Counted from the stretch's first letter, positions 2,781 through 22,345 are shown. The stretch: 64,000 bases of DNA from Selaginella moellendorffii (GCF_000143415.4 NW_003314289.1:752292-816291), one strand, 5' to 3'. Notes: generated from the sequence alone by a model not told the origin. Program-made: numbers and translations.

Positions 2781-2784
2781 CTCT

Positions 2785-3159
2785 TGCTATTTGATGGTAG
2801 CTTCTTGGACGGCGAGAACCATGTTTTCTCCACCGAGGGCCATCTCTTCCCTGTCAACCAGTCGTGCCAGCAACAGCCCCGTCCCAAGGTACCAGAGGAT
2901 CAATCTCGCAAAACATAAGTAGCATTTGTGTGTTTTGACAGATATTGTCAAGGCCACGACTATTTTCAAGGCAAAAGCCCATAGACACCAGCACTCTTGC
3001 ATCAAAGACATGTCCTCGCTTGAGCAGAGGAAGTGTGGAATCGGCATGCCACATCCCAGACACTAACGCTGACCACTGATGTATTTCAAGGTCGGACTGT
3101 GGCGTAGCCGTGACTACTTGCACGAAGAGGTCGTGTAGTTTTGCTGGTTATTGCTCGTG
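2785..3159 (+). pseudogene. 3' fragment (last exon) of the MNS5-like mannosidase
   Basis: Near-identical to 13873-14248 (LFD..FL.GENHVFSTEGHLFPV...CSFAGYCS), with a premature stop and no upstream exons. Confidence 0.9.
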
Positions 3160-3338
3160 ACAAGATCACCAAAAGCATATGCAAATTATTTTCTTCCCAG
3201 AAAAAATAAGTATAGTTTTGCTGGCATATATATATTGATAATCCCAGAAGAAGAAAGAAAAAAAGAAAAAGAAAAAGCTATGGGTCACATGTAGGAATGT
3301 TTGGTTTCAATTGATTAAATAAATTTAAAATTATGTTT

Positions 3339-6300: not shown

Positions 6301-8220
6301 CTGCTCCAATACAAAGAGTGTTAGAGGGATCAGAAAAGGGAAGAGTAGAAGAAGATAGAAATATAAGAGGAAATAGTGGGGGGACAAAATTAATGGAAAA
6401 AAAAAGTAAAAATAGAGAGATAAAGAGGTGCAAAAGTGAAAAGAATGGATGAAACATAAAGAAGTATGAGACAAAGGGGAGAAGCCTCAAAATCACACTT
6501 AGCATGATTATGCTACAACCAATCTATACCAAAAATGAGGTAAAAAACTTGACTCAACACCACCCTTAATGGCTGCAACCCAAGCTCGAGATCACCTACA
6601 TGCACAATCAAGTCTATCTCATCCCATGCACATGCATGTGTATAGCTGTTGCCATAAAGAATGAAAACTAGATCCGCCACATGACGCAAGTGTAGGCAGC
6701 AACGTGTGGCAACAGGTCAAGCAATAGAAGATAAACTCGAACCTATATCAACCAACATAATAAGAGACCTCTTGTTATAAAAATGACCTTGGAAAATAAA
6801 CACTAGATGAATCGGTGCCGAGTGAACCCTTTAATGATACTCCCGAAAGAAAGATGGAGGGGTCACTGATTTATTCGCGCAAGGTCCCTCTGTTACTTGC
6901 GTGATTCCTTGTTTCCCAGATGCATCTCGGTGTCTAAACCTTCCACTGCATCAACACCAACAAGATGTTATTGATGCCAAGGTCTTCACCTAGAAAATGG
7001 AGGTCGCCAATTCGGAAAACACCGATAACACCAATAAGTGTGACCAACTTCATCACATGCCCAACAGCGAACTTCATGGCCATGACCATGTCCTCGCCCT
7101 TATCATTGGACTCAAGTAGCAGTAGCATCAACCTCCATTAGAATAGGACCATCACTTATAGGAAGTGGAGCGGAAGGATATGCAGTGAGAAGTGGAAGAG
7201 GTGACGTCTCATAACATTGTGCCAAGCGAAAAGCATCATCAAAGGTGGCTAGAGCAAGTGCATGCACAAGTTCAATAAGATCTTGATGAAGTGTTGGCCA
7301 CAACATTCCTAACTTGATCCGCTCTAACATATTTGGCTCCGCACGAAGTAAAAGGTTTCGAAAACGAATGCCAAATTACATCATCCACTCAGATGGCCCT
7401 TGATGAAGATGATGCAATTGTTGAAAGGCATCATCACATTTGTCAGCATGTCCAAATATGCATTTGAAGACGTCCAAGAGAACATTCCAATCCTCATGAA
7501 TAGCTGCACTCAAACCATTATACCACTACAATGTTGTCCTTTAAAGACACGTGAGAAACTCACACAAACGTCAAATATCATCCCAAAACTGATAAGTGGC
7601 AATCACCGTGAAGTGATCGAACCAATGGTACATATCATCCCCAAGATTCCCACAAAAGAACTCTGGTTGAACATAAGGATTAATACCAAGAGCAAAAGGA
7701 GCTATACCATGTATTGTGGATGCCACCATCAATTGAATTTGGTTATTCAATTACAATCGCATGGCATTAAGCAATTGCACCAACTGCTACTTCAGAAGTT
7801 AGAGGAAGAGACTGTTGCTCTGCCATGAAGATGAATGAAAAGGAAAGAGCAAAAGAAGATAAATGAAAAAGGATTAGAAGGAAAGAGAGATTTAGACAAT
7901 GGAAAAGCTAAATCTAAATAAAAAATTCTGAAAGGAAAGAACAAAAGAAATAAAATGGAACTAGATTTAGACACTGCAAAAACTAAATTTAAACCAAAAT
8001 CCCAAATTTAAGAGGGACAATGAAAAATGCCTCTTATCTCCACCAATGTGAGTGTATGGAATATGAAAAGGGAATATAGAAAATGTGTATATCAATTAAT
8101 ACAAAACCTCTACCTTATATATATGAGTAAATGATTTGGATTGAAATCAATTTGACAACTACCAAAATCCCACTACAGTAATATTAATATATGGCATCGT
8201 AGCCATACACCTTAAACACA
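3339..8220 (-). mobile_element. Degenerate Ty3/gypsy LTR retrotransposon
   Basis: Short LTRs TG..CA at 3339-3492 and 8047-8220; PBS TGGTGGAGAT (tRNA-Ala-like) beside the right LTR; PPT GAGAGGAGGGGATGA beside the left LTR. Broken gag, RT (YEFLVMPFGLNNAPATFQ, FIDD), RNase H and integrase lie in gypsy order. No clean target-site duplication. Confidence 0.92.
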
Positions 8221-8332
8221 AGATTAATTTAATTTTTTATCTTAAAATATCTTAGAATATCTAAATATATTTTAAGTAACCCATACAGGTTTGCTTAACC
8301 AAACCAAAACAAAGAATAAAAGGGAAATTAAT

Positions 8333-8406
8333 TTCCATTGCCGGGATTTGAACCCGGGTCGCCTGGGTGAAAGCCAGGTATCCTGACCGGACTAGACGAC
8401 AATGGA
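8333..8406 (-). tRNA. tRNA-Glu(UUC)
   Basis: TCCATTG/CAATGGA acceptor stem, anticodon loop CT-TTC-AC, GTTCAAATC T-arm, T-run downstream. Confidence 0.95.
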
Positions 8407-8443
8407 TCAATGAATTATTGGCCGTTCAAAAAGGTTGATTACA

Positions 8444-8453
8444 GTTTATAAAC
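8444..8453. promoter_or_regulatory. Palindromic TATA-like element GTTTATAAAC between divergent tRNA-Glu and Fic gene
   Basis: Reads TATAAA on both strands, ~40 bp from both the tRNA 5' end and the Fic ATG; conserved at 14499-14508. Confidence 0.45.
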
Positions 8454-8494
8454 ACAGATCCTTTTCCTATCAATAGGGTTTACTGCCGGGAATC

Positions 8495-9763
8495 ATGTGG
8501 TCGCTAGAGCCCAGCTTCTTCGATGAGCATGGAGCGCTTGTAAGTGATCTTCCAGCGCTAGATCCAGAGGATGCAGCTGCATGGCTCTCCGCTTCCACCA
8601 CTTTCTCGACGTTGAGCATCACGGCAACGGTGAAGGGTGTTGCGTTGCAATCAGTGAATGCTGCAAACCGCTATGCGCTGGTGCACAGGTTGGAACAGAA
8701 GTATCCCGGCTGGATGCTGCTCAAAGTGGTGCTTGCGGAGGTGCACTATCTTCTGTTTGACAAAGCTGGGGCGCAGCAGCGGCTGCTCGATGTCCAAGAT
8801 GCCATAGGGCGTGGTAAGGATGAGCAGCTGGACAGGGCCGTGCTGGAGCTTTCCAAGCTTATCCAGGAGGAGGACGATGGAGATGAAGATGACGAAGAGG
8901 CGGAGGTGGAAGAAGGCATGCAAGTCACTTCCTATGTGCGACCTCAACCTTTCTCGTCTGTTCCGTGTTCGTGGAGTGCGGAGGAGATTCGGCACAAGTG
9001 GCAGACGAGAACTGAAGTTGATATTGCTGAGTTTGGTCGCTACGCAGCCATCACCACAAACGTCCTGGAAGGAGTGTTTTCGCTTGAGGGTCGCAGCTTG
9101 TCGCGGCTGGTCAAGCGTGGATTCGACGTTGACTCGATCGAGGGTGTTCCTGCCACCAGTCGCATCAAGAGGAAGGCCAAGATCGTGCAAATCCTGGAGA
9201 ACACACAGTCCTGCTTCGAATACCTCATAAAGAATTCTTCTGCTTTCAATGACTCGACGATCCAAGATGTACACAAGAGACTTATGGAGGGGAACAATCT
9301 CAACCACGAGGTTGACGATGGTCAGTTTTATGCGTGTCTCGTGCCTTGCGGCAGCTACCGCCGAGTTCCATGCTATACAACCAATGGCAACTTGGAAACT
9401 CGATTTTGTCCTTGGAGGCAGATCCCTACGGAGATGCAGTGGTTCTTTGAAGAGGCTCGGCAAGCAATGTCCGACGACTCTGCTGATCCATTCTTGGTAT
9501 CGGCCTGGCTACACATCGCGTTTCTCAGCATTCACCCCTTTGCTGATGGTAATGGTCGGGTGGGCCGAATGATTTCCTCTCTTCCACTTGTCAAGGCAGG
9601 GCTCCCCCCTGTTGTGGTATCTTTCGAGCGGGAGCGGAAGAAGAAGTACTTCGCTGCACTGATAGAAGCTCGTAAGTCGGATGATCTAGTACCGCTGGCT
9701 TCGTTTCTGAAGGAAGAGGTTGAGCTAGCGATCATTCACATCTCCAATTTGGATGATGCCTGA
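8495..9763 (+). CDS. Fic/DOC-domain protein (putative AMPylase), intronless, 422 aa
   Basis: Canonical HPFADGNGRVGR motif (9533-9568), upstream inhibitory-type TNVLEG (9056-9073) and an acidic linker. Confidence 0.92.
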   Translation: MWSLEPSFFDEHGALVSDLPALDPEDAAAWLSASTTFSTLSITATVKGVALQSVNAANRYALVHRLEQKYPGWMLLKVVLAEVHYLLFDKAGAQQRLLDVQDAIGRGKDEQLDRAVLELSKLIQEEDDGDEDDEEAEVEEGMQVTSYVRPQPFSSVPCSWSAEEIRHKWQTRTEVDIAEFGRYAAITTNVLEGVFSLEGRSLSRLVKRGFDVDSIEGVPATSRIKRKAKIVQILENTQSCFEYLIKNSSAFNDSTIQDVHKRLMEGNNLNHEVDDGQFYACLVPCGSYRRVPCYTTNGNLETRFCPWRQIPTEMQWFFEEARQAMSDDSADPFLVSAWLHIAFLSIHPFADGNGRVGRMISSLPLVKAGLPPVVVSFERERKKKYFAALIEARKSDDLVPLASFLKEEVELAIIHISNLDDA

Positions 9764-10527
9764 TCTTTGTCTTGAATTCGTAATTTCCTATTAAGCAATT
9801 TCTGGTTGTCGAGCTGAATTTCTAATGGAAATTAAAGCTTAGTCTTCTTGCGTTGTGAAAAAAGAGATCTCACTCGTTTTTCTAGAGTTGATTGGCAAGA
9901 GTTTCTTTGCAGATTGCAAGAGTCGAGTCTTGTTTCTTCTCAGGGCATCATCCCCGATCCATAGGAAGCGCCTGCTTGCTCCCACAACTCACGTTGCTAG
10001 GGTCCCTGCCAGTACAGCGCTCATGCGGGCAGCTGGAGCTGCACCACTTGCTGCAAGGCGGGAGAGGTTCTGACCAAGGTCATCAAGGTTCTGTAAACAT
10101 TTGGTAGTGACCTGGGATTGATGCCAGCGTTGTGTAGCAGCAGCACATTTGGAAGATTTCACAGTGCATGGCTCTAGAGCTGGAACTCACACTTCGCAAT
10201 AGTAATGCAAAGGCTCCAATTCAGTTGAATTTATGCATTTAGAACTTTAACACTCACTCAAGAGCTGGTGCAAATTGAACCTGTTTATTTTATGATCGGG
10301 AGAGCAGGTTGCATGGTATATGAGAGGAATTATCCCTTTCCATTGAGGTAAGAATTGCCACTTAAATGCTATTTTGTGTTAATTGGAATTTATGTAGATT
10401 TATTGTAAGACATCATACTGCAAAATTTTCAAAGTCAAAATTGAAATTGGTGCTAAGACATAGACTAAAGCCTAAAGAAACAATCATCCTTTTGGCTATG
10501 TTCTGTTCCTGTTTCGCATTCGAAGCA

Positions 10528-11753
10528 ATGAGCATCGAGCCAACCACACTCATCTCAGCACTAATTGCATTTCCACCAATAAATCTTGTAGGCAAGGCTG
10601 CCTTAAAATCCATCAAAAGCTTCATCACAAATGTCTGGGAACTGGAGAGCATTGCAATACAGGCAGCATCAGATGAAGGTCAGCTTATGTACTTGCCATT
10701 TGTGGAAGACAGCATGAGCAGATTAAACCCGAGCTCATCCGTCTACAAGACTTTGGAGAGGGGCAAAATCAGTCTTGAGAAGCTCAGGAGCTTCGCCTTT
10801 GAAGCTTCAAGCAGTGGTACCATGAACTGGCTTCAGAGGTTTGATGAGATTTTATGGTCTCTTTTTATCTTGATCTCCTTGTACAGAAACAAAGACGCCA
10901 ACAACATCTTAGAGATCAAATCAGAGGTGGAGAAGTTTGTTCACAGCATGGATGTGATAAATCTCAGCGAGACACTCAAGGCAAACGAGCTGCAAGCTCT
11001 CAAGATGAACGAATTATGCGAGTCCCAGATGCAAGGAATGAGCAGATTGTTTGACTTGTGGGAATCGCGATTCGAGCAGCTCATCCAGCTCCAAACTTCT
11101 CAGTTCCAGGCTATCCAGCAGCTGATTAGCAGTAATCAGGTAAGTCAACCAATGTTTATGCTTGTTCAGTTTATCTCGTTGAAAACCTACAGCTGAGGCC
11201 TCTACCGCAATTGCAATCCTCTGACGATCAAAATCGACATTTGCTGCATGAAAACCACCACCACCACGATCAATCACCAACATCAATCGTTCGCGCAATC
11301 AATGGTGGCTTTCAGGTGTGCATGAACTTCAAGGTATACCAACATGTAGTTCCAGTGGCAACGAGCACAAAGCTGCAAACCCAGTTTGCACTCGCGGGCA
11401 ACGTCCAAAGCTTCCCATACACCGCTGGTTACGCAGCGGTTGTCAAAGACAAGCTCACAGACGCCGAAGATTATCTCTCCAGAGAGGTGGGAAGAGCAAT
11501 TGGATTTTTCACAGTCCCAGCGAAAGGCCTGGTGTACACCACCTTTACCATGGACTTGATGGATCGAGGGACGCTGGCGGCCTCGGGTGTGGCAATGGCT
11601 CCATCGTTTACTTACATTGTGAGTGGTGGCACTGGCGAGTTCCTTGGAACCTTTGGCAAGATGGAAGTTCTCATTGTTAGCAGTGTTGACGATGGAGCCA
11701 ACTTTATTCTCCTTCACGATGTCACGCTCTATTCTTCCACTAGCATGAATTAG
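10528..11753 (+). CDS. Fusion of an RPW8/MLKL-like helical N-terminal domain and a C-terminal dirigent-like domain (3 exons, ~374 aa)
   Basis: GT-AG introns 10839-10886 and 11140-11192 join ORFs 10366 and 11211 in frame. The C-terminus has dirigent motifs (FKVYQH, VKDKLT, SREVGRAIGFF, GTL..SG, IVSGGTGEF); there is no clear signal peptide. Confidence 0.75.
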
Positions 11754-11790
11754 AATATGCTTTGATACTTCTAAAATTTAGGGATTGTGG

Positions 11791-14248
11791 ATGATGCTAC
11801 TCCTGCTAGGCTTGGCGCTCGTCGAGGCGCTGAGCGCGCCGATTCCTAGGTTTGAGGAGCGCGCAGCTCTCAAGGAGGATGTCCGAAATATGTAAGATCT
11901 GTGATCTATCCTTCGTGTATTTACTGATTGGAGAGCTCAATCGATCGCCAGGTTCCATCACGCCTACGACAACTACATGAAATACGCCTTCCCGGTACGC
12001 ATTTCTCTTTCCTGACGAAGGAAACTCACGAGATTTCGCTTTGTCTGTGGCAGCACGACGAGCTCAAGCCGCTCAGCTTGAGTTATACTGATTCGCTAGA
12101 GGAGCTTGGAAATCTTAAGGTAAAGTTCTCGCAGCTTTTCTTCCTTCTACCTTTTTTCTTTTCTTTTTCCTAGCTTGAGCGTCTCTCAGAGACTTACAGT
12201 GGATCGGCTTTGACACTCGTGGAATCCTTGTCAAGGTAATAGTGTTCTTGGATGGATTTCCATTTCTTCTTTATCTTTTCTTCTTATATACACAATGAAA
12301 CATTCTCGTCAGCTTGGCAGTCATGAAGAACAGCAGCGAGTTTGAGAAGGGAGTTTTGTGGCTCGCCGAGAATTTATCCTTCGACGTTGATGTCCGCGTG
12401 AACGTTTTCGAGGTACGTTTGATACCGTCGCAGAGCCAGATAACGTAAACTCTTTAACGGTGAAGTCTCGCTTCAGTGTAATATCAGGTTACTAGGGGGA
12501 TTAATTTCTGCACACTTCCTAGCCAAAGATTCGAGAAAACAATTGATGTCAAATGGATACAATGATCAGTTGCTTATGCTTGCAGAGGACTTGGGACTGC
12601 GGTTGCTGCCAGCTTTTGACACGCCCACTGGAATTCCATACGCTTGGATCAATCTGAAGGTTTGCTACATTTTGTCAACGCTCGCGTTTCATTTGGAAAG
12701 CTTTTTATAGACCGGAGTGCACCCAAACGAGACGACCGAGACAAGCACTTCCGGGTGTGGTAAGTAGCGAGTTTCGTTCCTTTCTTCGTTCTTTTCGTTG
12801 GTTTAAGTAAAAGTTTCATCTCTCAGGCTCGTTGGTTTTGGAGATGGGAGCGTTGTCCCGCCTAACTGGCAATCCACAGTTTGAGAATTTAGCTTTGCGA
12901 GCTCTTCGCAAACTGTGGAGTATGCGCAGTGAACTCAACTTACTGGGAACGAACCTTGACATAAATACTGGACGGTGGACTGAGTACTCTTCAGGCATTG
13001 GTGCTGGTAATATTTTTTAATGTAATTATTTGGCCACCGTCCGGCTTGTTCTTTCTGCAGGTATCGACTCCTTCTATGAATATCTGGTAAAAGCCTACAT
13101 TCTTTTCGGAGGCGAAGAATACTGGGATATGTTTCAGGACGCTTACCGAGCTGTCCAACAACACTATAGATATGGTTCCTGGTAAACTATCAGTAAACAG
13201 TTCATATGTATTAAAAGAGCTTTATATCAGGTATCATGACGCTGATATGAGAACTGGGAAAGCTACATACTGGCAGTTCACGAGTCTGCAAGCATTTTGG
13301 CCTGGACTACAGGTAGGAATTTATCGAGAGTTTTATGAAACGTTATGATCTTTTATTGCAGGTTTTGATAGGTGATATTGCCGCTGCAAACGCTACCCAT
13401 AGAGAATTTCTCCGCTTGTGGGAGATGTTTGGTATATTTCCTGAAAGGTTTCGTTTTGTAGAGTTTTGATCCTGCTTTGCTTACTATCCTTATTATCTTT
13501 TTTTTTGTCTCAGATACTTACTTGATGCCGGAAAAGTCCACCCCACAGAAAGATACTATCCACTTCGTCCAGAGTTGGCCGAGTCCACATTTTTTTTATA
13601 CCAAGCTACAAAAGGTAGAATAGTAAGTAAAGTTTGGATTTAATTGTATGTTTTGCTTTTCAGATCCTTGGTATTTGGACGTGGGAAAGAAAATCATGAA
13701 CTCTATCAATGTGTTTAGCCGCGTCCCCGGAGGCTTTGCTAGCGTCAGAGATGTCATGACTATGAAACTAGAAGACCATCAACATAGTTTTTTCTTATCA
13801 GAGACGTAAGTACTCACACCTCCTGCGTGCTGATGATCACAAATCCTTTCAACAGGTGCAAATACTTGTATTTGCTATTTGATGACAGCTTCTTGGATGG
13901 CGAGAACCATGTTTTCTCCACCGAGGGCCATCTCTTCCCTGTCAACCAGTCGTGGCAGCAACAGCCCCGTCCCAAGGTACCAGAGGATCAATCTCGCGAA
14001 ACATAAGTAGCGTTTGTGTGTTTTGACAGATATTGTCAAGGCTACGACTATTTTCAAGGCAAAAGCCCATAGACACCAGCGCTCTCGCATCAAAGACATG
14101 TCCTCGCTTGAGCAGAGGAAGTGTGGAATCGGCATGCCACATCCCAGACACTCGCGCTGACCACCGATGCGTTTCAAGGTCGGACTGTGGCGTAGACGCG
14201 ACTACTTGCGCGAAGAGGTCGTGTAGTTTTGCCGGTTATTGCTCGTGA
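11791..14248 (+). CDS. MNS5: GH47 EDEM-type alpha-mannosidase (MNS5-like), ~14 exons
   Basis: Signal peptide; MFHHAYDNYMKYAFPHDELKPLS, LTLVESLSSL, VNVFECNIRLLGGL, GIDSFYEYL, YPLRPELAES and FFLSETCKYLYLLF across GT-AG introns. Confidence 0.9.
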
Positions 14249-14387
14249 CAAGATCACCAAAAAAAAGCATATAGAAATTAATTTTTCTTCCCCAGAAAAA
14301 ATAAGAATTATTGACAATCCCAGAATTGTCGGTCATATATATATTGACAATCCCAGAAGAAAAAAAAAGAATAAAAGTTAAATGAAT

Positions 14388-14461
14388 TTCCATTGCCGGG
14401 ATTTGAACCCGGGTCGCCTGGGTGAAAGCCAGGTATCCTGACCGGACTAGACGACAATGGA
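14388..14461 (-). tRNA. tRNA-Glu(UUC), second copy
   Basis: Identical to 8333-8406. Confidence 0.95.
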
Positions 14462-14532
14462 TCAATGAAATATTGGCCGTTCAAAAAGGTTGATTACAGT
14501 TTATAAACACGAGAAAGAGACTGCTGCGAATC

Positions 14533-15901
14533 ATGTGGTTGCTAGAGCCCAGCTTCTTCAATGAGCATGGAGCGCTTGTAAGTGATCTGGCTTTTGCATT
14601 TGGCAATCATTGATAACTATTAACTATCATCTAAGATAATTGATTATTCTTGTCAAAAGCCAGTGCTAGATCCAGAGGATGCAGCTACATGGCTCTCCGC
14701 TTCCACCACTTTCTCGACGTTGAGCATCACGGCATTGGTGAGGGGCGTTGTTTTGCAATCTATGAATGCTAAACAGCGTTATAGGCAATTGCACAGGGTG
14801 GAAAAGGAAAACAAGTACCCTAGCTGGATGCTACTCAAAGTGGTGCTGGCGGAAGTGCATTATCTTTTGTTCGACAAAGCTGGGGCGCAGCAGCGGCTGC
14901 TGGATGTCCAAGATGCCATAGGGCGTGGTAAGGATGAGCAGCTGGACAGGGCCGTGCTGGAGCTTTCCAAGCTTATCCAGGAGGAGGACGATGGAGATGA
15001 AGATGACGAAGAGGCGGAGGTGGAAGAAGGCATGCAAGTCACTTCCTATGTGCGACCTCAACCTTTCTCGTCTGTTCCGTGTTCGTGGAGTGCGGAGGAG
15101 ATTCGGCACAAGTGGCAGACGAGAACTGAAGTTGATATTGCTGAGTTTGGTCGCTACGCAGCCATCACCACAAACGTCCTGGAAGGAGTGTTTTCGCTTG
15201 AGGGTCGCAGCTTGTCGCGGCTGGTCAAGCGTGGATTCGACGTTGACTCGATCGAGGGTATTCCTGTCACCAGTTGCATCAAGACGAAGGCCAAGAGGAA
15301 GGCCAAGAGGGAGGCCAAGATCGTGCAAATCCTGGAGAACACACAGTCCTGCTTCGAATACCTCATGAAGAATTCTGCTGCTTTCAATGACTCGACGATC
15401 CAAGATGTACACAAGAGACTTATGGAGGAAACCAATCTCAACCACGAGGTTGACAATGGTCGGTTTTATGCTTGTCTCGTGCCTTGCGGCAGCTACCGCC
15501 GGGTTCCATGCTATACAACCAATGGCAACTTGGAAACTCGATTTTGTCCTTGGAGGCAGATCCCTACGGAGATGCAGTGGTTCTTTGAAGAGGCTCGGCA
15601 AGCAATGTCCGACGACTCTGCTGATCCATTCTTGGTATCGGCCTGGCTACACATCGCATTTCTCAGCATTCACCCCTTTGCTGATGGTAATGGTCGGGTG
15701 GGCCGAATGATTTCCTCTCTTCCACTTGTCAAGGCAGGGCTCCCCCCTGTTGTGGTATCTTTCGAGCGGGAGCGGAAGAAGAAGTACTTCGCTGCACTGA
15801 TAGAAGCTCGTAAGTCGGGTGATCTAGTACCGCTGGCTTCGTTTCTGAAGGAAGAGGTTGAGCTAGCGATCATTCACATCTCCAATTTGGATGATGCCTG
15901 A
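14533..15901 (+). CDS. Fic/DOC-domain protein, second copy (5' end interrupted by an insertion; possibly rescued by splicing)
   Basis: ATG at 14533 is homologous to 8495; HPFADGNGRVGR and TNVLEG are intact; insertion at 14589-14661. Confidence 0.8.
14589..14661. mobile_element. 73-bp MITE-like insertion
   Basis: Absent from Fic copy 1; ends GGCTTTTG...CAAAAGCC form a perfect 8-bp inverted repeat with an imperfect internal extension. Confidence 0.6.
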
Positions 15902-16893
15902 TCTTTGTCTTGAATTCATAATTTCCTATTAAGCAATTTCTGGTTGTCGAGCTGAATTTCTAATGGAAAACTCTTCTTGCGTTGTGAAAAAAGATATCTC
16001 TCTCGTTTTTCTAGTTGGTTGGCATCAGTAAAAGAGTTTCTTTGCAGATTGCAAGAGTCGAGTCTTGTTTCTTTTCAGGCATCATCCCTGATCCATAGGA
16101 AGCGCCTGCTTGCTCCCACAACCCACGTTGCCACTGCCAATACAGTGCTCATGTGGGCAGCTGGAGCTGCACAGATCCGGAGCTTGTTGCAAGGTGGGAG
16201 AGATTTTGTCCTAAGGTCATCAAGGTAGCATGTAATAACCCAAATAATAATTAAGGTGTGGAAGCATTAGTAATGAGTTGTAGAATTTTGACAATTATGA
16301 AGCAACTAAGCAAAAAATGTAAAATAATTAATTGAATTGGTAAAAATTAATTATTTATAAACATTTGGTAGTGATTTTGGATTGATGCAAAGTTGCATCG
16401 TGTAACAACAACACACTTGTGAGATTTCACAATGCATAGGTCTAGAGTTGGGATCTCACACTTTGCAATAGCAATGCAAAGGTTTCAATTCAAGTATTTT
16501 TAAACTAACTTAATGCATTTAGAACTTTAACACTCACTCAAGAGCTGGTGCAAATTGACCCTGTCAGGTTGCATGGCATATGAGAGGAATTATCCCTTTC
16601 CATTGAGGTAAGAATTGCCACTTAAATGCTAAAAACAAATGGTAAGAAAGGAATTATCCTTGGTGGCAACAAAGTTTGCCATGCTGGAGGTTGCACACTT
16701 GGAATGCTAAACACATATGATAACTCTGTCCATCCATTGGTAGATTTTAAAATTCTTTTAATTTGGACTTTATGTATGGCTTAGTATATAAGAGGTGCCT
16801 ATTCCACGTCTTTTAGTTACAAGTGTACTTAAACACTAAAACTTAATTATCCTCACTCACACTTTTAAATTAATTAATTGAGTAGAGCTATAG

Positions 16894-17859
16894 ATGGAAA
16901 TGATTATATTACTAATTATTTCTTTTCCTTTATGCATTTTAGCACCACCACCATTTGGATATATATTTCCTGATCAGCCTATGACGCTTTACTCCAGTGA
17001 TCCTGATGCACTATCTCGAGATAATTTTAAAGGTATATTGAAGAATATAGATGAATATATTGACTCCCTGAAAGGAGAAAAAACTCTTCCAACAAAGAGT
17101 TACTCAAGAACGTTTTATATTACTGATAATGTATATTGTATTTTAACATTATGGATTCATTTGCCACTGGGTTTTAATGCAAAAGAACCTACTTATACAT
17201 TATGCAAGATAGTCCCACTACAATATGGATATAATGGATATGAAGCTTATAATATTTTTCGCAGGCTTCGGGATTATATTTCCACGAATGCAATCACTAT
17301 AGGTAAAGACCAAAATAAAAGGTATTTTGGAGAATTTGAAGCTAATTTTAGAAATTTTGCTATGCAATATAATATTTATGGTTCACATCCTCCAACATTT
17401 TATAATAATTTTATTATTGAAAACAATACTTATCATAAACTTAATAATTATGATGGTTATTGTGATATTTATAGATCATCTCTTATTGGTGGTGATATTA
17501 CCAAACATGGATCTACCATATTAAATGGAAATAGCTTAGTCTCACCATACACAAATTATAGATTGACAATGAAAAATTGTCAATTATTCTTTTATCAAAT
17601 TAAAAGTAAAAAAATTATCTGGAAAAGTGAAGAGTTTAATTTATTGACTTCAAACAAAGAAATTAATTCAGAAATCTTAAATGATTGTTTTGCACATCTA
17701 GACAGAACTGGCCATTTCACTATAGTAAATAATAACTTTGTAATATGGGAATTAATATCACAACATTCTAAATATCAAGCAGGATTAGAAGTATCAGATA
17801 ATGGCTATCTTTATATTTATGATACAGAGAAAGGTAAAATTTTATGGTCAGCTCATTAA
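16894..17859 (+). CDS. Secreted protein with unknown N-terminal domain and C-terminal bulb-type (GNA-like) lectin domain
   Basis: Hydrophobic N-terminus; three beta-prism-II-like repeats (LVSPYTNYRLTMKNCQLFFY..W, CFAHLDRTGHFTIV..W, LEVSDNGYLYIY..LWS); intronless and very AT-rich; TATA at ~16786. Confidence 0.75.
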   Translation: MEMIILLIISFPLCILAPPPFGYIFPDQPMTLYSSDPDALSRDNFKGILKNIDEYIDSLKGEKTLPTKSYSRTFYITDNVYCILTLWIHLPLGFNAKEPTYTLCKIVPLQYGYNGYEAYNIFRRLRDYISTNAITIGKDQNKRYFGEFEANFRNFAMQYNIYGSHPPTFYNNFIIENNTYHKLNNYDGYCDIYRSSLIGGDITKHGSTILNGNSLVSPYTNYRLTMKNCQLFFYQIKSKKIIWKSEEFNLLTSNKEINSEILNDCFAHLDRTGHFTIVNNNFVIWELISQHSKYQAGLEVSDNGYLYIYDTEKGKILWSAH

Positions 17860-20236: not shown

Positions 20237-21424
20237 CTAGAGACTAAATCTCCCGCTGAGGCTCTCGATCCACGAGGAAGACTGGAAGATGATGCTGTGC
20301 ATCCGCGCCTCGTCCTCGCGGATCCGCCGCCGCTTGCTCCGCAGCTCCTCCTTCCGCCGCTGGAGCTCCTTGTTCACCTCCTGCAAGCTCACCTCGATGT
20401 ACTGGAGAGACTTCTCCTCCTCCTCGAGGCTCACTTGGCCGGCGCCGCCAACGATGGCACTGGGACAAGTCGGGGAGGCGCTCCGGAGCTGCTGGACCCG
20501 CTCGATGAGCGACGAGGAGGCGGTGGTGGCGGTGGCGGAGTTTGGAGGAGCGGCGTTCCCAGCAACGGCGCCATTGATGGAGCAGCCGAGCTGGAAGTCG
20601 GAGAGTGGGAGGTTGCAAGCGCCGACGCTGGCATACGGTTTGAAGGGGCGGGTGGTGGCGGCGGTGGTGGTAGCGGCGGCGGTAGCGGTGGCGGCGGCGG
20701 TGGGCGATACCGGGGCGCTGCTGCAGCTGTTGATGACGAGCGGCGGCGAGTTTTGCTCGTCCGAGGTGAGCGTCCCGGAGTTGGGCGGCGAGGAGGTGGG
20801 CGAGAGCGTGGACGAGTGGGAGTGGCCGGCGGGCGAGCGTGGCGGCGGCGGCGGTGGCGGCGCCACCGCGTTGACGATGGGGATGGTGAGCAGCGGCGTC
20901 GACTGCGTGCGCTTGCGCGAGATGCTGCGGATGGGCTTGGAGTAGCAGGGCGCGCAGAGCGGCGGCGAGGCGGAGGAGGAGGAGGGCGAGTCGGGGCCGA
21001 AGTGTGGCGTGAAGCAGATGCAAAAGAGGCGATTGTCGCACTTGGAGCTGAGCAGCGAGATGGCGAGCTTGAACGAGGCGCGGCCGGACACCATCCGCGT
21101 GGGGCGCTCCTGGGCGGGGAACTCCACGCCGTTGAAGGTGGTGAAGAGCGGCGGCTCCGCAAGGAAGGGCTTGTCGTCGCGCACCACGGGGGAGTGGTCG
21201 TGGGCGTAGGCCACCGACGCGACGATGGTCACGTCCTTGGTCACGTTGGCGGCCAGGTTGCCCGACTCGTCCAGGAGGTGGACGTTGAGCACGAACTTCC
21301 GGCGGCACGACGCCTTGCCCCCGAGCACGGTGAGGACGTCGGAGCTCTTGCCGATGCCCATGGCCTCGGACGCCACCGACGCGACCAGGCGGTAGGGCAG
21401 TGGAGAAGCTGCCGCCGCCACCAT
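20237..21424 (-). CDS. Protein with the CudA/STAT-like core of plant SH2 proteins (SHA/SHB) but no SH2 domain; C-terminal coiled coil
   Basis: EPPLFTTFNGVEFPAQERPTRMVSGRASFKLAISLLSSKCDNRLF...SKPIRSISRKR matches the remembered SHA/SHB central block, followed by an S/P/A-rich linker and a heptad-rich tail. Confidence 0.75.
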   Translation of the reverse strand: MVAAAASPLPYRLVASVASEAMGIGKSSDVLTVLGGKASCRRKFVLNVHLLDESGNLAANVTKDVTIVASVAYAHDHSPVVRDDKPFLAEPPLFTTFNGVEFPAQERPTRMVSGRASFKLAISLLSSKCDNRLFCICFTPHFGPDSPSSSSASPPLCAPCYSKPIRSISRKRTQSTPLLTIPIVNAVAPPPPPPPRSPAGHSHSSTLSPTSSPPNSGTLTSDEQNSPPLVINSCSSAPVSPTAAATATAAATTTAATTRPFKPYASVGACNLPLSDFQLGCSINGAVAGNAAPPNSATATTASSSLIERVQQLRSASPTCPSAIVGGAGQVSLEEEEKSLQYIEVSLQEVNKELQRRKEELRSKRRRIREDEARMHSIIFQSSSWIESLSGRFSL

Positions 21425-21669: not shown

Positions 21670-21998
21670 ATTGCTAAGTTGGAGTCTTGAATGCTGAAAG
21701 AGGTCGGGCCTTGAAATGAAAGGTGGTCGCTTGGAAGGAGGGGCAGCAGCCACTTCTGCAGGCGGCAGAGAGTTCCCGAAGCAAAAGAGCAGCGTCTCCA
21801 GCGTTGAACTCGAAAGTTCTAGTGTTGAATCATCCAAGTTGGAGATGTGAATGATCGCTAGCTCAACTTCTTCCTTCAGAAGCGAAGCCAGCAGCTTCTA
21901 TCAGTGTAGCGAAGTACTTCTTCCGATCCCGCTCCAAAGATACCACGACAGGGCCTGCCTTGACAAGTGGAATAGAGGAAATCATTCGGCCCACCCGG
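21670..21998 (-). pseudogene. Third Fic paralog, C-terminal fragment only
   Basis: RVGRMISSIPLVKAG.VVVSLERDRKKYFATLIEA then LASLLKEEVELAIIHISNLDD after a frameshifting deletion. Confidence 0.88.
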
Positions 21999-21999
21999 G

Positions 22000-22345
22000 A
22001 GTGGCTGTTCAGCCTATGCAACCTGTGCAACCTGTCAAGGAGAGCGTGGAGAGGAAAGTTGTGGCGACCAAGAAACGGAGGGTCGTTGTCACGGGAATGG
22101 GGGTTGTGTCCTGCCTTGGACATGAGCCGGATGCTTTCTACGGGAATTTGCACCACGGCACGAGTGGAATAACAGAGATTGAGACATAGTGTCCAGAATG
22201 ACATACCGATAGGAATGATGGCTGCATCAGATCCACCAGCGAGCATCACGCTGTGCAGTAATGTTTTCTATGATTGTGTGAAAAATATTCTAACTAGATC
22301 AACTCTCTCGCAATAGTTGCAGGGCGTCCCCATCCATCCCTGGTC
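22000..22345. pseudogene. Scrambled beta-ketoacyl-ACP synthase (KASII-like) fragments
   Basis: The + strand gives TKKRRVVVTGMGVVSCLGHEPDAFYGNL..GTSGITEIE; the - strand gives MLAGGSDAAIIPIG and GWMG. Confidence 0.8.

Follow-up and report, generated by a model that had tools for sequence, protein, structure and literature searches.

Does a land plant possess enzymes of the Fic family and, if so, how did it come by them? The question is raised by a 64,000-nucleotide stretch of DNA from the lycophyte Selaginella moellendorffii (hereafter the window), which is part of scaffold GL377593.1 of assembly GCA_000143415.2 and contains two long open reading frames (ORFs) resembling Fic AMPylases. A recent review of AMPylation states that eukaryotic Fic is found only in metazoans, as a single gene, and is absent from plants and fungi (2025; PMC12409994). 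Kinch et al. (2009) noted Fic only in metazoa and 'a few fungi' (PMC2686095). Our full-text literature searches returned no report of a plant or chytrid Fic, in agreement with the original prediction for this locus, made from the sequence, whose author knew of no characterised land-plant enzyme.

Here we report that the Selaginella Fic family is a known kind of enzyme in an unexpected lineage. We hold, with moderate confidence, that Selaginella Fic is a soluble, self-inhibited AMP-transferase that came from a chytrid-like fungus, has persisted in a few non-seed plants and underwent local duplication. The gene survives in at least one lycophyte and one liverwort, within a eukaryotic family centred on chytrids and other microbial eukaryotes.

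Fic copies in an unannotated nuclear locus

The original prediction described two full-length Fic genes with the motif HPFxDGNGRxxR and an upstream TNVLEG, a third fragment at 21.7-22 kb and a local expansion of the family. Both ORFs and both motifs are present as described. The two proteins are 91% identical to each other, and both match the Pfam Fic/DOC family PF02661 (E 8.5e-17 and 2.4e-17; 62.2 and 64 bits, against a cut-off of 24). The features of the locus, in window coordinates, are these:

8306-10371, plus strand: duplicated unit 1 (tRNA-Glu, Fic copy 1 and about 600 nucleotides of 3' flank), 80-97% identical in DNA to 14361-16631
8333-8406, minus strand: tRNA-Glu(UUC), divergent from Fic copy 1 and 88 nucleotides from its ATG (ARAGORN)
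8495-9763, plus strand: Fic copy 1, an intact ATG ORF of 422 residues without introns (ORF list, Pfam)
9056-9073 in copy 1 and 15170-15187 in copy 2, plus strand: TNVLEG, the inhibitory (S/T)xxxE(G/N) motif, residues 188-193 (sequence)
9167-9181, plus strand: Lys/Arg-rich stretch KRKAK in copy 1 (copy alignments)
9533-9568 in copy 1 and 15671-15706 in copy 2, plus strand: HPFADGNGRVGR, the catalytic Fic motif, residues 347-358 (sequence)
14361-16631, plus strand: duplicated unit 2 (tRNA-Glu, Fic copy 2 and about 600 nucleotides of 3' flank), from DNA alignment with unit 1
14388-14461, minus strand: second copy of tRNA-Glu(UUC), 71 nucleotides upstream of the copy 2 ATG (ARAGORN)
14533-14577, plus strand: first 15 codons of Fic copy 2 from the homologous ATG at 14533 (tblastn, residues 1-19, 89% identity; DNA alignment)
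14578-14659, plus strand: 82 nucleotides of copy 2 that start with GTAAGT and end with AG, a candidate intron or N-terminal disruption (DNA alignment)
14660-15901, plus strand: main ORF of Fic copy 2, both motifs intact (in the ORF list a GTG ORF, 14663-15901, of 412 residues; Pfam)
21826-22001, weakly up to 22174, minus strand: third Fic copy, a decayed 3' remnant running from RVGRMISS to the C-terminus (sequence similarity)

Copy 1 encodes a TPR-like N-domain (residues 1-135, approximately), an acidic linker and a class II Fic domain (about 156-421). For copy 2, the description as a full-length gene holds for the main ORF and its motifs but not for the start: the frame that opens at the homologous ATG (14533) is interrupted, after 45 coding nucleotides, by a 70-nucleotide insertion (14589-14658) found neither in copy 1 nor in the other haplotype. 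Read straight through, copy 2 meets a stop within the insertion; excising the 82 nucleotides listed above preserves the frame. Because local introns measure 49-77 nucleotides, this segment may be a young intron; just as possible is a lesion that leaves copy 2 with only a product shortened at its N-terminus. The two copies also differ in their Lys/Arg-rich stretch, whose length changes in steps of 24 nucleotides: copy 1 has KRKAK, copy 2 has 13 residues, and the other haplotype exceeds both. The stretch resembles a nuclear-localisation signal.

The third fragment is indeed derived from Fic; it lies on the minus strand, however, is clear only over 21826-22001 and has internal deletions. It starts past the catalytic motif, which is absent, and is best read as a pseudogene remnant. 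An ORF at 21851-22189 on the plus strand, which runs into a ketoacyl-ACP-synthase-like exon (VVVTGMGVVSCLGHEPDAFYGNL), starts within the antisense of this remnant. Because of this overlap, the remnant may contribute to the 5' region or presequence of the ketoacyl-ACP-synthase-like gene.

How did the copies arise? The local duplication is real and differs between haplotypes. The duplicated unit, about 2.1-2.3 kb in the DNA alignment, is larger than the Fic gene itself. Two origins were considered and rejected. A retrocopy does not fit units that carry upstream tRNA genes and downstream flank and have no poly(A), nor a remnant that stops at the end of the ORF. Carriage by a transposon does not fit either: around the units, no terminal or inverted repeats beyond the copies themselves and no transposase were seen. 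Selaginella Fic would instead have been copied locally by DNA-level segmental duplication with gene conversion.

The allelic scaffold GL377587.1 (L001) carries a single intact Fic ORF of 436 residues, flanked by the genes for a glycosyl hydrolase of family GH47 and a RING protein, and this ORF has no 70-nucleotide insertion of the kind seen in copy 2. Window positions 8408-11492 are missing from L001 (around 3015-3027). This 3.1-kb presence/absence difference between the haplotype scaffolds takes out Fic copy 1 together with the 5' part or most of a pair of helical (RPW8-like) and dirigent ORFs. Locus structure and Fic copy number thus differ between the two haplotypes of the sequenced plant.

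No gene is called at any Fic copy on GL377593.1 or GL377587.1. The exact Fic ORFs are absent from a collection of 15 billion proteins, and in neither the word-indexed nor the exhaustive HMMER protein search did a Selaginella Fic appear or any protein exceed 53% identity to it. The Fic genes are nonetheless genuine nuclear genes of S. moellendorffii that have gone unannotated; the missing models could plausibly be explained by repeat masking, given that the family is multi-copy.

Could the genes belong to a chytrid living on the plant, or the locus be an assembly chimera, as the original prediction had allowed? Soil chytrids are the nearest named relatives of these proteins, but identity to any of them is only 44-46%. 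Two independent haplotype scaffolds, each about 2 Mb long, place the Fic copies next to spliced plant genes, at distances of a few hundred bases. Two neighbouring ORFs in the window are exact S. moellendorffii proteins: an RING-H2 ATL3-like protein and, at 20237-21424, an allelic form of SELMODRAFT_442137. The prediction that the Fic genes sit among intron-rich plant genes is borne out by the GH47 gene between the two copies, whose 14 GT..AG introns (49-77 nucleotides) are seen in four RNA-type runs from four studies. The stretch is found in DNA-type runs from the same organism and in runs from about nine studies. At 52-53%, with about 59% at third codon positions (GC3), the GC content of the Fic genes is intermediate among neighbouring plant genes. 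The haplotype context and the spliced neighbours exclude contamination or a chimera for practical purposes; we give either a negligible chance.

Coverage by RNA sequencing had been proposed as a check on the prediction, and contigs of both copy types were found. In run X6, a 1116-nucleotide RNA-type contig aligns at 14823-15897 with 20 letter differences and a 24-nucleotide gap. All of these mark copy 1 exactly, which shows transcription of copy 1 or of one of its alleles. A 179-nucleotide piece in run X15, at 14857-15035, agrees with copy 2 at every site that separates the copies, and X15 and X4 contain further short Fic pieces. The Fic genes are expressed at low depth: Fic contigs have a depth of about 4-6.5 against 78-220 for GH47, levels that are rough since they come from contigs. 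In the four runs no RNA contig covers 14500-14699, and the Fic 5' ends and the candidate intron fall outside contig coverage.

As a separate observation, two RNA-type runs labelled as two other organisms, X12 and X18, contain 22% and 14% of the 31-mers of copy 2. Near-identical Fic sequence thus occurs under other species labels, from close relatives or mislabelled samples.

Have the copies been maintained by selection? Among the three ORFs (copy 1, copy 2 and the other haplotype), the Nei-Gojobori ratio of nonsynonymous to synonymous divergence (dN/dS) is 0.31-0.48 (Fisher p 1e-4 to 0.02). Codons 41-100 of copy 1, compared with the other ORFs, have a dS of 0.43-0.45 and a dN/dS of 0.26-0.29 (p about 0.001-0.002); outside these codons dS is 0.02-0.04. 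This mosaic of divergence is consistent with gene conversion across most of the gene, and with purifying selection acting over a long time on an older segment. A test for positive or diversifying selection in the variable N-domain gave no sign of it. Most of the additional differences in that domain are synonymous (dS 0.45), a pattern that suggests mosaic ancestry or gene conversion.

These results bear on a less flattering view of the copies, namely that they are functionless and decaying, repeat-like passengers of an unstable region or a mobile element and were masked by annotators for that reason. The family is multi-copy here and its copy number differs between haplotypes; one copy has decayed to a remnant at 21.8-22.0 kb and another bears the 70-nucleotide insertion; RNA depth is low and gene models are missing. 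Yet three ORFs of 412-436 residues are intact with every catalytic residue present, dN/dS is significantly below 1 even in the segment with a dS of 0.45, neither terminal repeats nor a transposase were seen around the units, and a liverwort retains intact orthologs. We regard the passenger view as improbable.

Class II architecture and predicted activity

If Selaginella Fic is a functional enzyme, what kind of Fic protein is it? The original prediction placed it with the self-regulated class II enzymes such as metazoan FICD/HYPE, and this placement was upheld by the near-invariance of the motifs across the family and by the structural comparisons (Z 21-23 to BtFic, FICD and SoFic). An AlphaFold2 model built on a 70-sequence alignment reached a mean predicted local distance difference test score (pLDDT) of 95.4 and a predicted template modelling score (pTM) of 0.93, and was compared with known structures by VIA-align. 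Residues 156-421 match BtFic (3cuc) with Z 23.0 and a root-mean-square deviation (rmsd) of 2.9 A over 235 residues, and human FICD with Z 22.4 and an rmsd of 3.0 A over about 228 residues. C. elegans FIC-1 and SoFic follow at Z 21.4 and 21.3; more distant Fic toxins and effectors score Z 12-14. By sequence, the best match in the PDB is FICD (E 6e-10); with a family profile it is BtFic (E 6e-23), where TNxLEG aligns, weakly, on the SNHLEG of BtFic.

The catalytic motif fits HxFx(D/E)GN(G/K)RxxR in both copies. In 27 relatives H347, P348, D351, G352, N353, G354 and R355 are invariant, and N189, E192 and R358 nearly so. TNVLEG lies in cis, 155 residues N-terminal of the catalytic His, at the end of a predicted helix (174-191). 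On sequence and model, then, Selaginella Fic is a Fic-family member that falls into class II on every feature tested. Two other assignments were rejected. Class I toxin-antitoxin pairs (FicT/FicA, VbhT/VbhA) are disfavoured by the inhibitory motif in cis and by the weaker structural match to VbhT and EcFicT (Z 12-13). A Doc toxin is disfavoured by the Selaginella motif, which reads GNGR and not the NKR of the HxFx(D/N)(A/G)NKR kinase variant.

The N-terminal 135 residues, modelled alone, reach a pLDDT of 86, and almost all of the top matches are TPR domains (Z 7-8.8), including the TPR region of FICD (residues 107-200; Z 7.3). Because the tool calls Z 7-9 unspecific for helical repeats and Pfam, run on the N-domain alone, gave no TPR or other match even at E 10, we use 'TPR-like' tentatively. 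As predicted, the protein has no obvious transmembrane or signal segment: the highest 19-residue Kyte-Doolittle mean is 1.46 and is located within the Fic domain, and the N-terminus is acidic and polar. Selaginella Fic is likely a soluble protein.

FICD is a useful point of comparison. The two share an inhibitory Glu motif that precedes the core in cis and, if the N-domain is indeed TPR-like, they are laid out alike: that region first, then a linker and the Fic domain. They differ in that FICD is a type II membrane protein of the endoplasmic reticulum (ER), whereas Selaginella Fic has no N-terminal membrane anchor and is for that reason probably not an ER-lumenal modifier of BiP. Selaginella Fic also has an acidic linker and the variable Lys/Arg-rich stretch, and it is multi-copy where FICD is single-copy. 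Identity in the Fic domain is only about 20%. The missing anchor, the low identity and the placement in a different clade indicate that Selaginella Fic is not an ortholog of FICD. The bacterial proteins BtFic (BT_2513, 3cuc) and SoFic (SO_4266, 3eqx/3zcn) are likewise class II; BtFic is the best match by structure and by profile, and its SNHLEG corresponds to TNVLEG of Selaginella. Unlike Selaginella Fic, the bacterial proteins have neither a TPR-like N-domain nor an acidic linker, and SoFic has a C-terminal winged-helix domain instead.

FICD, SoFic and BtFic suggest, by analogy, a mechanism. ATP would bind at the Fic loop. His347 (in HPFADGNGR) would activate the hydroxyl of a target Ser, Thr or Tyr for attack on the alpha-phosphate of ATP, and AMP would be transferred. 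Glu192 of TNVLEG would block productive ATP binding until relieved and may also support de-AMPylation. The TPR-like N-domain would select the target protein.

An active Fic protein need not AMPylate a chaperone-type target. Its main chemistry might be de-AMPylation, or the transfer of UMP, GMP, CMP or phosphocholine; or it might serve as an effector of defence or cell death in a fast-evolving, immune-type cluster. Fic domains as a group use several donors, and the PDB matches include CDP-bound and phosphocholine-transferring Fic proteins. The neighbours are suggestive as well: the pair of helical (RPW8/MLKL-like) and dirigent ORFs, a lectin-like ORF and an ATL-type RING gene, in a locus whose structure differs between haplotypes. 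On the other hand, the motif is HPFxDGNGRxxR, the canonical form for AMPylation, the inhibitory Glu is shared with the AMPylases that are the closest structures, and the variable N-domain has no sign of positive selection. We consider such a different role unlikely, though less so than the passenger view.

Chytrid relatives and the probable route into plants

Where did a plant acquire such a gene? The original prediction suggested either horizontal acquisition from a fungus or bacterium or patchy retention, and proposed a profile search and phylogeny. Among annotated proteins, these place the plant clade as sister to soil chytrids. The fungal part of the suggestion has therefore stood, with chytrids and one liverwort as the nearest relatives, and the bacterial part has not. 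Bacterial relatives are at most about 30% identical and are separated by a long branch of 2.4 changes per site; a bacterial donor was rejected on these grounds.

The best full-length matches are proteins of Spizellomycetales chytrids (Thoreauomyces, Geranomyces and Powellomyces), with 44-46% identity over 99-100% of the protein, and a Fic protein of the leafy liverwort Calypogeia fissa (46%). Other named members come from Fimicolochytrium, Rhizophlyctis rosea and a Chytridiales isolate, and there are two more Calypogeia proteins on other scaffolds. More broadly, the family extends over chytrids, Dikarya and protists from EukProt and MMETSP, and metagenomic relatives lie on contigs with eukaryote-type neighbours (KTI12, LSM, EF-hand, Solute_trans_a).

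The chytrid 'fido domain-containing proteins' (Thoreauomyces, Geranomyces, Powellomyces, Fimicolochytrium, Rhizophlyctis) match Selaginella Fic in architecture over the full length and form its sister clade. They are uncharacterised and differ in a Ser/Pro-rich C-terminal tail of 40-60 residues, which both plant proteins lack. The Calypogeia proteins (CAM6084453.1, CAM6109073.1 and CAM6090761.1) are the only other plant members found. They are encoded at several loci on chromosome-scale scaffolds beside intron-rich plant genes, are 46-49% identical to Selaginella Fic and are annotated only as 'unnamed protein product'. One Calypogeia gene, on a scaffold of 46.8 Mb, lies between intron-rich aldehyde-dehydrogenase genes, has both motifs intact and differs from the Selaginella copies by a single mid-gene intron.

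In the main tree (IQ-TREE, LG+C20+F+G4, 43 rows), Selaginella and Calypogeia form a clade with support of 99/94, the Spizellomycetales form its sister clade (99/98), and the two are joined at 100/98. A tree of every strong match (107 rows) adds nothing else to the plant clade and puts Rhizophlyctis on the chytrid side. With a bacterial outgroup, the plant and chytrid clade is nested within the eukaryotic family, beyond Dikarya and a clade that contains protists. The stem of the plant clade is 0.18 changes per site, the two terminal stems are 0.53 and 0.62, and Selaginella and Calypogeia are 1.19 changes per site apart. Most likely, the Fic gene entered plants by transfer from a donor resembling a soil chytrid.

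Could the gene have descended vertically from an ancient eukaryotic soluble TPR-Fic gene, without any transfer, and been lost massively from most plants and fungi? The breadth of the family, from chytrids and Dikarya to EukProt and MMETSP protists, lends this some appeal, as does a TPR-linker-Fic layout that recalls metazoan FICD. The plants, however, are the specific sister of one group of soil chytrid orders, nested inside other chytrid-containing and microbial-eukaryote clades, and do not branch separately, as would be expected of Archaeplastida; moreover, green algae and land plants would have to have lost the gene independently very many times. We think vertical descent very unlikely.

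A further question is whether plants acquired the gene once. One alternative dispenses with a single ancient acquisition in an early land plant: the lycophyte and the liverwort received Fic separately from related, unsampled chytrid-like donors, or it passed from plant to plant. Only two plant lineages have the gene among all annotated plant proteomes in the collection, the plant stem is short compared with the terminal stems, and the mid-gene intron of Calypogeia has no counterpart at that position in the Selaginella copies. Against these points stand the monophyly of the plant proteins, the absence from both of the chytrid tail, and the distance between Selaginella and Calypogeia, which is larger than those within the sister clade of chytrids, as an old split would predict. 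Separate acquisition is a possibility to which we give a minority chance, the largest among the alternatives considered here; we somewhat prefer one old acquisition, with loss in most lineages afterwards, over two acquisitions.

The explanation as a whole (a class II soluble Fic, a chytrid-like donor and local duplication) is the one we favour, with the moderate confidence given at the outset, and several points tell against it. AMP transfer, auto-inhibition and TPR-mediated targeting are deduced from homology throughout the family; the TPR similarity itself is in the unspecific range, and the placement of Glu192 at the nucleotide site depends on the weak collinear alignment with SNHLEG of BtFic. 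Copy 2 is possibly broken at its N-terminus. Expression amounts to a few low-depth contigs without 5' ends, in runs whose RNA label is a guess, albeit one backed by the splicing of GH47. The main tree gives no firm branching order among the three large subclades of the family, and the relatives are for the most part unnamed proteins from metagenomes; because of this we infer the direction and timing of the transfer. Finally, the absence of Fic from other plants refers to annotated proteomes only; since even the Selaginella reference fails to annotate the gene, other plants could likewise carry it unnoticed.

The surrounding locus and the wider Fic family

The first 18 kb of the window (1-18 kb) are a patchwork of segmental duplications; the 3' end of GH47, for example, is repeated at 2784-3210. 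GH47 transcripts differ from the window over 12427-14087 by about nine single letters that recur in most or all of the four runs (among them 12602 G>A and 14087 G>A). These look like differences between alleles or accessions, not RNA editing.

Two adjoining plus-strand ORFs follow Fic copy 1, at 10366-11196 and 11211-11753. The first is helical and the second has a Dirigent domain (Pfam E 1e-8). The pair has no gene model, is mostly deleted in the other haplotype and is without RNA contigs in the four runs; part of the helical ORF recurs at 1892-2172 as a piece with 77% identity. Beyond Fic copy 2, a plus-strand ORF of 321 residues at 16894-17859 stands out with a GC content of 27.7% (GC3 16.8%) amid genes of 50-68% GC. 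It lacks both a gene model and a Pfam match, and is present in two copies in the other haplotype (L001, about 959-2737 and 7876-9351). A language-model search suggests a weak resemblance to bulb-type lectins (B_lectin; scores 0.87-0.91), which we take as a lead only. A 67-nucleotide segment that ends in GAG|GTAAGA occurs, 97-99% identical, at 10305-10371 and 16565-16631 of the window and at 1029-1095 and 7876-7942 of L001. It looks like a short first exon with its splice donor, shared by the helical/dirigent pair and the low-GC ORF.

What does a plant Fic mean? The reference annotation of S. moellendorffii misses real multi-copy genes. Since Fic is among them, claims of its absence from plants that are based on proteomes are unsafe. 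For biochemistry, Selaginella Fic offers a soluble, anchor-free relative of FICD, and for the study of gene transfer it adds a clean fungus-to-plant candidate among non-seed plants. We tentatively propose a broader scenario, which we hold with distinctly less confidence than the identity and origin of the gene: a soil chytrid supplied early land plants with a soluble TPR-Fic AMPylase resembling FICD, and a lycophyte and a liverwort still use it as a cytosolic or nuclear AMPylation switch, possibly acting on chaperones or in defence. If true, plants would have a native Fic-based AMPylation system, the first one described in them, and chytrids and protists would turn out to harbour an entire family of eukaryotic Fic proteins that has escaped study, contrary to the stated absence of Fic from plants and fungi.

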